64,000 nucleotides of DNA from Mytilus californianus. Taxonomy: Eukaryota. Below, one piece after another: positions 18 through 41,773 of the stretch. Position 1 is the stretch's first letter, and every line of letters begins with the position of its first letter. A program made the translations under genes and the position numbers. The notes under the pieces were generated by a model that was not told the DNA's origin, searched no databases, and saw only the letters and a list, made by a program, of their open reading frames with translations. The stretch is taken from contig NW_026262690.1 in the NCBI RefSeq assembly GCF_021869535.1, forward strand, positions 53,258,001 to 53,322,000. The letters run 5' to 3'.

Positions 18-20
18 ATG
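18..20 (+). CDS. CaM: Gene 1 exon 1 (ATG only; 5' UTR extends beyond window)
   Basis: acaacATG|gtaagt; an ATG-only first coding exon is the known animal calmodulin layout; exon 2 starts in phase 0. Confidence 0.8.
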
Positions 21-3000
21 GTAAGTCATTTAAACTCGTTAATTCTATTGTACATGGACTTTAAATGTATTTCAAATGAAATGATATAAATATTTGGTTG
101 TCAAACAACAAAGAGCTTGACAATTTAAAAGCATTAAGATTTTAATATACCACATTATAATTGCATCTGTAAAATAATCGACAGTGTGTAAAATCACATT
201 GTTGTTTCGCGGGCTTTAAATCTCGACAATGTGTACAATGAAATGTAAATGAGATTTATATTGCTATTTTGGCTATGTAAAATAATTGTAGTGTAATAAT
301 ATTTATATGAAGTGTTTACAAATATCCAACGGCTTAACAACAAAGTTACAAATACCCAAAGTTACAATCAAACAACGTTACAAACATACAAATGTAGGAA
401 TAAACAATACTATCCTTATCCTTTTTTAAAATGTACATTGTTCGGTTTATATCTCATTTCCTCACCAAATGTACACGCCAAAATTAAAAAAATTGACATG
501 TTTTTAACAAGTTATATTTAGTTTGCTGAGAAATGTTCAACGAAATATCAGATCCAAGGCTAGTTTTAAACATCATTTAATAAGTAGAAGACCTGCTTAT
601 CATCAGTCGATTGACTACGTATGGAATATTTGTGGGAGACATATACGAGAAGTTTAAACCGTATATATATATGGAATGATCGAAGTTCTATAATAGTTTA
701 AATTCCTCAGTAAATACATTCATCGAAATAAGTCCATAGCAAATAAACGAAATATACTTCCAACACATAGGCACATTGTTCTGCTGCCATTGATTCCCAA
801 GTCTCATGTATCTATAAGAGATGCTACGAGGGCCGACCACTCTCGATAGCCAAAACTGAACATTAAAAAAATCTCCATTTGATAAATACTAGTATCTCGA
901 TAGGCGAAGTACTGTAGTAGCTAGAATATGTAATAAACAAAATTATATTTCTTTCCTTAGGTTGCAATGTCATACATATTATTTTCTCTCACAGGCTGAT
1001 CAGCTGACAGAAGAGCAAGTTGCTGGTAAGTATCAGAATATATAACAGGAAAACTGTCTGGATTTTCATATGTAAACATTGTTTATGTACCGATACAAAC
1101 TATATATGGAGATACGGGTTTCCTAAGGCTTTCTCGGTTATTTCTTATTTGATTTTGGATTTTGTAATATGTATTTCAACATGATTGTCATTCTGACATA
1201 AGTTTTAACAATCCAAACCGGTTTTGAAATAATATTGTGTGGGTATTTGTCAATGTGCCTGACAAAAAAATAACAAAAAAACCCAAAAAAAACGAAAAAA
1301 CAAAAAGCAAATGACTTCTTGAGGTCAACATATACGATCTGTCTATGATATTATATGCCATATGTCAATCTTATTTAATGAACCGTTCCGCCCGATGTCT
1401 AGAAAAGTTTGGAATAAAAATAACAGAACTTACCAAAAGTCTGCCAACAAAATTTAATTCCGTAAATATGGTACAATCTGGCCGAGACAATAATAGACGA
1501 GTCCGACTTTGAGCAGTCATGTCAACAGGTGGCTGGTAAAACTGTTTGTTGTTTTTGTTTTCGATGAATATAAAACTCGGAACAGAAACTACAATATTTT
1601 GTGGGAATTCAAATTTGCTATTATTAAATAACATACACATGCTGTGAGTACATTCTTGCAGCAGTCAAAATCTATCAACCTAACGCATACTTACATATGT
1701 AATGTGAGGGTATCCGATTTGCATCTATTTTGACAGTTTTTGCAACGTCATGCTTCATTGCGCCCATGCCTATCTTATCCTCCTTAAAAATCGAATGATA
1801 GATGTTTTGCTTTATTTCTCCACATTTTGTATGAAATGGATGTGACATATATTAATTTCTCATTTTTAAAAGTCGACTTTTTGTAGATGTCGCATGCAGC
1901 TTTCCGTAAATTTTACTTTTTGCTTCACTGGAGACTTTCTCTGTTGATATATAATGTGACCGTTTTGTGTATCCTTAAGAATATTTAGCTGTGTTGAAAG
2001 ATGTGCATAATGATAAATAATAAAAAAAAAAAAAAAATTGTTTAGTCTCTACGAAAACCTGTATGATAACTATTGATTTTTATGCAAAATGGGTGCAATT
2101 TGGGTACTCTAATACGTTAAGTAGCTCGTTCTGAACAGTGAAAAAGAGTAAAAGAATAACAATAGACGATTTATAAATTTTGCATACTTCACATCGAAAA
2201 TATATATCACATTATGCATTTTGTACGCATAGTCCACAATGTAAACTATAATTAAATGTTTTACTTCTATCAGATAAATGTTACCCTGCTGGATGTTTAA
2301 TGAAATAATGATATCCTTTACCTTATTTTGCTATTGCAATGACGCAGCTTATTTCTTAAAATTTAATGAGGATCCCACTAACAGCCCTACAGTTTTTTTC
2401 TCATAATAAGTATTTTTTACAGTCACGGTAAACAATTATTTGGTTTATTTTATTTAATAATGGTACTTTGAGTAAAATGGCTTTAGTCCCCGCAAATTAC
2501 AGGTAGCGCTGAGCACTGAACAACACACTGAAAGGTCATCTTTGACTTATGAAATCGAATTTAATTTGTTATAATTGTATTCTATGATTCTTCACTTACT
2601 AAGATTTATAAATACCTACTCAAGTCTTCGTCTTTCCAAGTAGTTTATGTAAGTCGTAAAAATCAACGGAAACATACAATAATTTGCTCTGATAGTTTGT
2701 ATTTTAATTTATAAGTTTAGGATTTCAGTTGATAAGTGCACTTCAGTTTTCAGATAAGTGTGTATTTTCACTGTAGGTGAAAGAATATTCATCTCAGCCT
2801 AGTGATCATTTATTGAATTTGTCGAAAATGTCTGCCTCTGAAAGGGTAATATAAATTTAAGGAAATGCAGAAAACCCATTTATATGACAGCACCCCAATA
2901 ACATAAGTGAACCATACTAATAAGTTGTCCAAGCCGTGACCTTTCTGTGGTCAGTTGGTTATAGGTTCAATATTGTTAGGAGAAAACCCGTGTTTAAGCT

Positions 3001-40500: not shown

Positions 40501-41773
40501 TATAACGAAATTGAACTTAGCTTGGCTATTTGCGAGATATACATTACATTGCATTCAAACTGGTCACGATGGCGACTATAACACTTTTGCTGCGGATAAA
40601 TCCCATTATACCGTCAGGACACTTTGATTCATTAGATTTATTGGTAGAGCTAACCCTCATCACAGAGTCCTGATAGGAAACATAAGATCTGGAACATCGT
40701 ATTAAACGACAAAGATACTCACTTTATAAGCAGGTACTTGAAGTATTGTTAAATTCATTAAACAATTGAAAAGAAATTAAAAACCGCATTGAAGAAGTGC
40801 AGTGTTTTGATATGTCGTTCGCATTTATTTGGGAAATGTCGAGTCGAACTTCCTGAAGGGTAAACACTTTTCAATTACCTAGTTTTTTTTTAATATTTAT
40901 TATGTGAAACTGATTCTGTCACTTTAACCCTCATATTATCATAATTATTTACTCTTGAAATCAAAATTTTCAACTTTCAAAAAGCTCTATAAACATTTTT
41001 TACTTAAGCAAACACGTTCCTTTATCCCTATATATTGTATTTGTAATGAACTAAGTGAGAATCAATGTTTGGTTGAACTCCAAGTCCTGTTGACCTTTTC
41101 CCTTTGCTTTCTAAAACATGTGAGCGACGTGAAATATTTTCCAAACAACGAAAAATAATACCATACATTTTAGAGCTTCCAAACGATTTAAAATAATGCC
41201 TATAATTTAAATTTATCTAAATCAATTTGTCTTTACAGGAAATGGGGAAATAGACTTTGACGAATTTTTGTCGATGATTGCTAAAAAGATGGGGGATATT
41301 GATTCAGAGGACGATTTAATTCAAGCTTTTCGGATTTTTGACACAAATCGAACCGGGTACATTACATCACAGGAGTTCAGGGAAGTCATGATGAATCTTG
41401 GAGAACGGCTGTCATATGATGAGGTCACAGAAATGATAATAGCAGCAGACAAACATTCCACGGGAAAAATCAATTATGCAGGTACAAACAGTGGGAAAAC
41501 ATTATCATTTTTCGGATAATATTTGATAATTAAAAATCAATTGTACGATTTCAGTTTCAGTAACCTTGCATCTGAAGGTAATGAGTTATACATAAGGTAT
41601 GGGGTTAATCGTGAATGCAAGAGTCAGAAGAATATTAAACGTTGCGATTAAAATATTTCTGAAACAAAATGTACATTAAAATAAAAAAAAAATAGAATGA
41701 CAAACAGTGCATACGCTACTAATTTACCATTTGTTTCTTCTTTTCAGAGTTTTGCGCATTGTTAACAAAGTAA
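34558..41773 (+). CDS. Calmodulin-like protein, cluster gene 4 (150 aa, C-lobe degenerate); join(34558..34560,36960..36996,39165..39308,41239..41481,41748..41773)
   Basis: 453 nt spliced. Protein [151 protein letters not shown] second ATG|GTAAG candidate lies at 35472-35474. Confidence 0.92.
36960..36996 (+). CDS. Gene 4 exon 2 ([13 protein letters not shown])
   Basis: ctattgtag|ACATCG...GAAG|gtaagt, 37 nt (3n+1); LTxxQV resembles LTEEQI. Confidence 0.9.
37900..38490. mobile_element. HINE-like element in gene 4 intron 2
   Basis: CCCCTGTCCGTCCGTC microsatellite end, internal repeats GTGCACTTTGTCAGGATTTTGAT, terminal GGGGGCAT. Confidence 0.45.
39165..39308 (+). CDS. Gene 4 exon 3
   Basis: ttttacag|AGTTT...GATG|gtatgt, 144 nt; [13 protein letters not shown]. 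Confidence 0.96.
41239..41481 (+). CDS. Gene 4 exon 4
   Basis: ctttacag|GAAAT...GCAG|gtacaa, 243 nt; overlaps ORF 41268..41519. Confidence 0.96.
41748..41773 (+). CDS. Gene 4 exon 5 (EFCALLTK*)
   Basis: ttcttttcag|AGTTTTGC...AAGTAA. Confidence 0.92.

Follow-up and report, generated by a model that had tools for sequence, protein, structure and literature searches.

We herein describe four genes of the calmodulin (CaM) family, g1 to g4, found in a 64,000-nucleotide (nt) window of Mytilus californianus DNA (C110:53258001-53322000, part of a chromosome-scale scaffold). All four are intact and intron-bearing, lie on the plus strand and occupy window positions 18-41773. In our reading, which taken as a whole we regard as the best explanation of the data and as very probable, the four genes are part of a tandem array of about 20 members that spans approximately 390 kb and is itself one of several such arrays in the genome, and two of them, g2 and g4, are old, single-copy calmodulin-like (CML) genes that diverged independently of each other. 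A first-pass annotation of this DNA had reported four same-strand genes with internal exons of 144 and 243 nt and identical intron phases, and it proved right wherever it could be checked, down to the limits of the group, position 18 being the start codon of g1 and position 41773 the stop of g4. What it took for a cluster of four genes is, however, part of the much longer array.

The genes were recognised in an initial scan of all six frames for EF-hand loops and open segments, in which calmodulin-like exons of the plus strand fell into four groups, and the exon borders were fixed by an AG acceptor, a GT donor and an open frame (Table 1). Searches were run exon by exon, and exons were joined only for counts of codons and stops, for the tree and for the comparison of nonsynonymous and synonymous substitution rates (dN/dS). 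Two internal exons, of 144 and 243 nt and bordered by AG and GT, are present in each gene; in both, the first two bases and the last base belong to split codons. The intron phases are equal in g1-g4: phase 0 after the exon that carries the ATG, phase 1 at the three later introns. The joined models comprise 149 (g1), 148 or 158 (g2), 149 (g3) and 150 (g4) codons, with no internal stop and with GT..AG at every intron. The 243-nt exon equals the sum of two human exons of 107 and 136 nt. As the first-pass annotation held, this is a calmodulin layout of animals: the first intron follows codon 1 (phase 0), the others interrupt codons 12, 60 and 141 (phase 1), and none falls in the 243-nt exon, which gives the five-exon layout published for molluscs and ascidians, without the vertebrate-only intron (PMC6171432). 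The ATG exon is seen in g1, where the start codon is directly followed by GTAAGT and the first exon begins upstream of the window; candidates for it exist in g2-g4, and g2 may have a first exon of 11 codons.

The array becomes visible when exon 4 of g1 is compared with the whole genome. This search gave 112 matches, 20 of which lie at C110:52.95-53.34 Mb (about 390 kb), 19 of the 20 on the plus strand and one broken, and the exon-3 matches parallel those of exon 4 along the array. Other arrays are located at 6.27-6.80 Mb and 47.5-48.6 Mb of C110 and on three other scaffolds. Continuous reading of the 200 kb before the window (53.058-53.322 Mb with the window included) bore out the first-pass suggestion that more members might be found there: the upstream members keep the 144/243 (±3) layout, one gene being inverted, and a complete five-exon calmodulin gene, G0 (locus L031, C110:53248331-53253708), ends only 4.3 kb before the window. 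G0 has the start motif ACAACATGGTAAGT in common with g1, ends in EFVHMMSAK followed by the stop, and differs from canonical calmodulin at four positions of exon 4. From G0 on, the local order is thus CaM-CaM-CML-CaM-CML. On the other side, the next member lies about 17 kb past the end of the window (exon 3 at C110:53338886). The array very probably grew by repeated, mostly ancient tandem duplication of a five-exon calmodulin gene at the DNA level, through unequal crossing-over, and such growth accounts for every copy keeping the layout ATG/~31/144/243/~29 nt together with the intron phases.

Further observations were made among the upstream members. A segment of about 17 kb with two calmodulin-like genes occurs twice, at C110:53150852-53168090 and at 53190975-53209503, about 40 kb apart and 98.5-99.2% identical, and reflects recent segmental duplication or else a haplotype left uncollapsed; in exon 3 of one copy (53203834-53203974), an in-frame TGA stands in place of the GGA of the other. 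The array member at C110:53077070-53078230 has a fragmented exon 4 and is likely a pseudogene, and a solitary exon-3-like piece with no exon 4 nearby was noticed at C110:53114233-53114376.

The duplications that gave rise to g1-g4 are old. Between any two of the four genes the proportion of synonymous differences (pS) is 0.70-0.97, that is, synonymous sites are saturated, and when the DNA of the g1-g2 half of the cluster is compared with that of the g3-g4 half, the alignment is confined to the three larger coding exons of g1 and g3. Intron and intergenic similarity between the two halves was not found, except for one stretch of 61 nt in inverse orientation. Since all copies share the same intron positions and phases, a spliced gene must have been duplicated locally at the DNA level and not by retroposition, in agreement with the first-pass proposal of ancient local duplication. 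Processed retrocopies can be ruled out, as g1-g4 each have four introns at the ancestral positions.

The order CaM, CML, CaM, CML within the window could also mean that a unit of one CaM and one CML gene was duplicated a single time, so that g1 pairs with g3 and g2 with g4. The gene order fits such an event, the g1 and g3 proteins are 94.5% identical, and with synonymous sites saturated in both pairs, the two may be equally old. However, in a maximum-likelihood protein tree of 35 sequences and 127 columns, g2 and g4 are split: g2 sits on a long branch together with its orthologue, while g4 and its Mytilus orthologues share a group with a member of the 6.7-Mb array (support 95/89). The near-canonical calmodulins form a bush without resolution, and g1 is as near to other calmodulins of the array as to g3. 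Moreover, g2 and g4 are just 38.6% identical, and the six derived residues that they have in common are no excess over the 5 and 7 found with an unrelated paralogue. They also differ in the length of exon 2 (28 vs 37 nt) and of the last exon (29 vs 26 nt), and it is opposite lobes of the two proteins that are altered. The lack of non-coding similarity between the halves speaks against a single duplication as well, and the alternation, which the first-pass annotation had presented as the pattern of the cluster, is broken by G0, a complete CaM gene directly upstream. A tree in which g2, g4 and their orthologues are held together is not rejected by the approximately unbiased (AU) test (p = 0.167, log-likelihood difference 8.8). 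On balance, we consider g2 and g4 not to be close relatives; duplication of a single CaM-CML pair is unsupported and, in our estimate, unlikely.

The genes g1 and g3 encode 149-aa calmodulins with about 93-95% identity to canonical calmodulin, and all four EF-hand loops are canonical in both (positions 1, 3, 5, 6, 8 and 12). Compared with the fly-type protein, 6 (g1) and 5 (g3) of the 80 residues of exon 4 differ, and the last exon deviates from EFVTMMTSK by three substitutions in g1 and by one in g3. The protein encoded by exon 3 of g1 is 100% identical to that of the canonical gene, and its readable part matches solved calmodulin, while exon 3 of g3 differs from the canonical one by one residue. 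In both length (148/149) and the four canonical loops, g1 and g3 conform to calmodulin in the strict sense, whereas g2 and g4 depart from it at several loop positions; identity or near-identity to the canonical invertebrate protein is found in none of the four. The first-pass annotation had noted that neither CaM copy is canonical and had suggested that a canonical gene probably lies elsewhere or further upstream, and both points held: that gene lies at C110:43.515-43.519 Mb (43515756-43518670) on the minus strand, 9.7 Mb from the window, and has the same exon layout. Its exon 4 (243 nt, AG/GT borders) is letter-for-letter fly-type, and its last exon encodes EFVTMMTSK before the stop, the identification covering the three exons that were read (exon 3, exon 4 and the last), all of which agree fully with the fly-type protein. 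Hence, g1 and g3 resemble the canonical invertebrate calmodulin (fly-type, PDB 4cln/8zlw) in their 149 codons, four canonical loops, five-exon layout and exon 3, but differ from it by substitutions in exon 4 and the last exon, the invariant protein being encoded 9.7 Mb away. The low divergence between g1 and g3 (dN 0.037, dN/dS 0.018) points to very strong purifying selection since their separation, and both most likely serve as Ca2+ sensors of the usual calmodulin type, with small changes in linker and C-terminal residues.

The genes g2 and g4 are clearly more divergent, being 49-61% identical to g1 and g3, and their exon 4 is 48.8% (g2) and 52.5% (g4) identical to the canonical one. Nevertheless, they belong to the family: the best solved match for exon 4 of g2, as of g3 and g4, is calmodulin, colinear with residues 61-140, and exon 4 of g1-g4 scores 49.8-77.6 bits against Pfam PF13499 (cut-off 30). 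In the Pfam EF-hand search, exon 3 of g1, g3 and g4 reaches 40-43 bits, whereas that of g2 gives a weak match to PF13405 (20.7 bits) that falls under the cut-off of 25. With this weakness in exon 3 of g2, all four genes have the EF-hand pairs of PF13499/PF00036 proteins, and g2 and g4 fall within the calmodulin-like proteins, a loosely defined class of about 150 residues with four EF-hands only. In g2, Thr occupies loop positions 3 and 5 of EF1, EF2 has Glu at 3, Glu replacing Gly at 6 and Thr at 12, EF3 is canonical, and EF4 has Glu at 3 and Asp at 12. In g4 it is EF1 and EF2 that are canonical, while EF3 has Thr at 5 and EF4 has His at 3 and Thr at 5. Both genes are single-copy, no second genome copy of g4 exceeding 57% identity.

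The altered loops recur in other mussels. P0151, named 'neo-calmodulin-like [Mytilus trossulus]', came up in a word search based on the open frame that surrounds exon 4 of g4; it has 150 aa and is 94% identical on exon 4. A further orthologue, P0152, has the length, N-terminus and odd loops of g4. For g2, the orthologue P0167, 'calmodulin-like isoform X1 [Mytilus edulis]', is 95% identical on exon 4, and P0013, P0168 and P0169, all of 148 aa, lie on contigs of at most 1 kb; P0013 (148 residues on a contig of 625 nt) was retrieved by a protein-representative search with exon 4 of g2. P0151 and P0167 correspond to g4 and g2, respectively, in the sequences of the N-terminal exons, the altered EF loops and the C-termini, but come from other species. 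These orthologues also completed the gene models. The 31-nt exon 2 of g1 and g3 was readily recognised, whereas the first motif scans of the window revealed no calmodulin-like exon 2 for g2 or g4; both were found later through the N-termini of the orthologues, that of g2, with good acceptor and donor, from the N-terminus M-TEPVNHRAL-E of P0013, and that of g4 from the matching N-terminus of P0151. The N-terminus of P0167, MTSADNLPLQYV, prompted the candidate exon at 13114-13146, which is likely the first coding exon of g2.

Transcription was followed for the two divergent genes, reads and contigs being aligned to a stretch of g4 only (35450-41449) and runs being searched by words for a stretch of g2 (16501-19300). 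Two contigs from two different studies, one of 1008 nt (run X1) and one of 404 nt (run X2), join 39308|41239, and the X2 contig joins 36996|39165 as well; both have 0 mismatches and no intron coverage, at a low depth of 7-13. Since g4 is single-copy, the contigs represent spliced g4 transcripts and not a retrocopy. Hence, g4 is spliced and expressed. As for g2, the share of the words of the stretch that is present is 0.09-0.20 in eight small RNA-type runs (0.15-0.20 in six of them), which represent one organism and three studies. It is 0.20-0.24 in three other small runs, of unstated kind and from two additional studies, and 0.70-0.84 in two large runs, also of unstated kind. The shares of 0.19-0.20 reached in RNA-type runs are close to the exonic fraction of g2. 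In intron 3 of g4, a repeat core of about 45 nt (39371-39419) is covered thousands-fold in RNA-type contigs and in raw RNA reads; reads over this core all continue into unlike sequence. The core is a dispersed transcribed repeat outside the g4 mRNA.

Several points weigh against our reading of the four genes and of the array around them. Beyond 53.058-53.322 Mb, the array is known from search matches and pieces of 3.2 kb only. The start-codon exons of g2, g3 and g4 are candidates, and the g4 contigs end within exon 2, so that its ATG exon is outside their reach. Direct support for transcription and joints concerns g4 alone, that for g2 being indirect, through the word shares, and runs X1 and X2 are taken as RNA by guess, although their spliced, intron-free contigs favour this. 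In the raw RNA run X21, which belongs to the assembly's own study and of which about 6% was read, there were no reads of g4 exons; this is not evidence of absence, and g4 expression may be low or tissue-limited. Of the junctions that the first-pass annotation proposed to map with RNA data, the two g4 joints are seen in the contigs of two studies. Finally, sequence alone allows only a prediction of how the altered loops behave towards Ca2+.

One could suppose that g2 and g4 have lost their function and are decaying, their EF-hand changes being random damage. Several of their Ca2+-liganding positions are non-canonical, exon 3 of g2 falls below the Pfam cut-off, and X21, the only run that is certainly RNA, lacks g4 reads. 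However, the frames of both genes are open and every intron has GT..AG, and the altered loops and the protein lengths are kept in M. edulis, M. trossulus and more distant mussel orthologues, with 84-95% identity on exon 4. Moreover, in other organisms full-length open reading frames of the g2 and g4 types lie on contigs no longer than about 1.3 kb, like spliced mRNAs, spliced g4 contigs come from two studies, and RNA-type runs contain g2 words at the exonic share. Random damage is thus largely refuted, and we consider it highly improbable. Since the odd loops are unchanged in the Mytilus orthologues, we regard them as specialised states and not as decay.

What these states may mean can be predicted from the loop residues. 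With EF3 as its one fully canonical loop and with N-lobe loops that lack liganding residues, g2 would sense Ca2+ through its C-lobe only, whereas g4, with a canonical N-lobe and altered C-lobe loops, would do so through its N-lobe only, and each is predicted to bind its own set of targets. Possibly, g2 (with a Ca2+-blind N-lobe) and g4 (with an altered C-lobe) are conserved 'half-sensors' with complementary losses, which may serve as lobe-specific sensors or as Ca2+-independent competitors for calmodulin targets, kept beside many near-identical, non-interchangeable calmodulin isoforms in one array. Two-lobe calmodulin signalling would in that case have been divided between separate proteins in the mussel lineage; we put this forward tentatively, with rather more doubt than trust. 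In the same conditional sense, we infer that the array may amount to the 'calcium-sensor toolkit' of the first-pass annotation.

The window contains one assembly gap, 152 N between g1 and g2, outside every coding exon (Table 1). It begins 3.2 kb past the g1 stop and ends at least 3.4 kb before both start candidates of g2; no calmodulin-like exon was found beside it and no reading frame spans it, therefore the four gene models are independent of the gap, which could conceal untranslated or regulatory sequence. The gap, together with the two nearly identical upstream segments of about 17 kb, which may be a haplotype duplication, might suggest that the tandem copies are an artefact of uncollapsed haplotypes or of a mis-join. 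Yet protein differences of 5-61% among the four genes, together with synonymous saturation, go well beyond allelic divergence, and the two large runs with most of the g2 stretch are DNA-sized and come from the same organism (kind not recorded). Furthermore, the gap lies in repeat DNA, an expected place for a break. We judge an artefact of this kind to have hardly any chance of being the explanation.

Table 1. Calmodulin-family exons, assembly gap and gap-flanking repeats in the window (window positions)
Feature	Position	Strand	Details
g1	18-20; 995-1025; 3378-3521; 4846-5088; 6007-6035	+	ATG; 31 nt; 144 nt; 243 nt; 29 nt; end EFCKMMTNK-stop
g2	16501-16528; 17261-17404; 18123-18365; 18885-18913	+	28 nt (NDPKEHLKL); 144 nt; 243 nt; 29 nt; end DFVNMMLSV-stop; span 12790-18913
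g2, candidate first coding exon	13114-13146	+	MTSSDLPSQYW, then GTAAG; gives 158 aa
g2, candidate alternative first exon	12790-12792	+	ATG only, then GTAAG; gives 148 aa
g3	26498-26528; 27613-27756; 28367-28609; 28874-28902	+	31 nt; 144 nt; 243 nt; 29 nt; end EFVRMMTSK-stop; span 24828-28902
g3, candidate ATG-only exon	24828-24830	+	ATG, then GTRAG
g4	36960-36996; 39165-39308; 41239-41481; 41748-41773	+	37 nt; 144 nt; 243 nt; 26 nt; end EFCALLTK-stop; span 34558-41773
g4, candidate ATG-only exons	34558-34560 or 35472-35474	+	ATG, then GTRAG
Assembly gap	9236-9387		152 N; intergenic, g1-g2
Dispersed repeat, direct copies	8551-8712; 8994-9155; 9688-9849		flank the gap
Dispersed repeat, several inverted copies	14138-15274		same repeat as at the gap; recurs upstream of g2

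The remainder of the window holds further repeats. At 55402-58083 (+) lies a decayed retroelement of the long interspersed nuclear element (LINE) type, whose open frames clearly match reverse transcriptase (PF00078, 1.7e-25), weakly match an endonuclease and include a PHD-like finger. Tandem repeats are found at 7659-7925 (unit 51 nt), 43857-44165 (unit 157 nt, 2 copies, 95% matching), 48434-48585 (unit 37 nt, 4.1 copies, 100% identical) and 58920-59273 (units 34/16 nt). Scans of the window for tRNA genes and Rfam families gave no matches, and its last 22 kb (42000-64000) contains no calmodulin-like exon.

Multiple calmodulin genes are not new in molluscs. In the abalone Haliotis discus hannai, four have been described whose proteins are 93-97% alike and which have five exons, exon 1 consisting of the ATG only; their intron positions and phases are identical, their intron sequences are unlike, none of the introns lies inside exon 4, and one intron of the human genes is human-only (PMC6171432). 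The same study cites earlier intron analyses suggesting multiple CaM genes in Mytilus. The abalone genes thus share the five-exon layout of g1-g4, but their linkage is not known in PMC6171432, whereas the mussel genes form a tandem array of many more members, with strongly divergent CML genes in between. Plant CML families, which are of independent origin, offer a likeness on a larger scale, being, like the bivalve orthogroup, large lineage-specific expansions of four-EF-hand sensors, partly in tandem, with single loops lost in some members. In bivalves, an EF-hand/calmodulin orthogroup, OG18, is enriched to 38.2 genes per genome vs 19.5 in other molluscs (PMC8382680), but that work gives counts per genome only, without this array or its structure. 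Our literature search did not find a description of this particular array. Its novelty is small all the same, the orthologues being annotated in sister species and the bivalve expansion being published.

Taken together, the biology is ordinary: g1-g4 are new members of a known, annotated and published bivalve calmodulin expansion, and the complementary, lobe-specific loop loss in g2 and g4 is the only point of mild interest. No general view is changed, as the multiplicity of CaM in molluscs, the five-exon layout and the EF-hand expansion of bivalves had already been published, and the divergent members are named in the annotations of sister species. Annotators, and those who study Ca2+ signalling, shell formation or stress responses in mussels, can make use of the exact models of four array members and of the position of the canonical gene. 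Moreover, with about 20 paralogues in one array, primers for calmodulin introns may well hit several genes.

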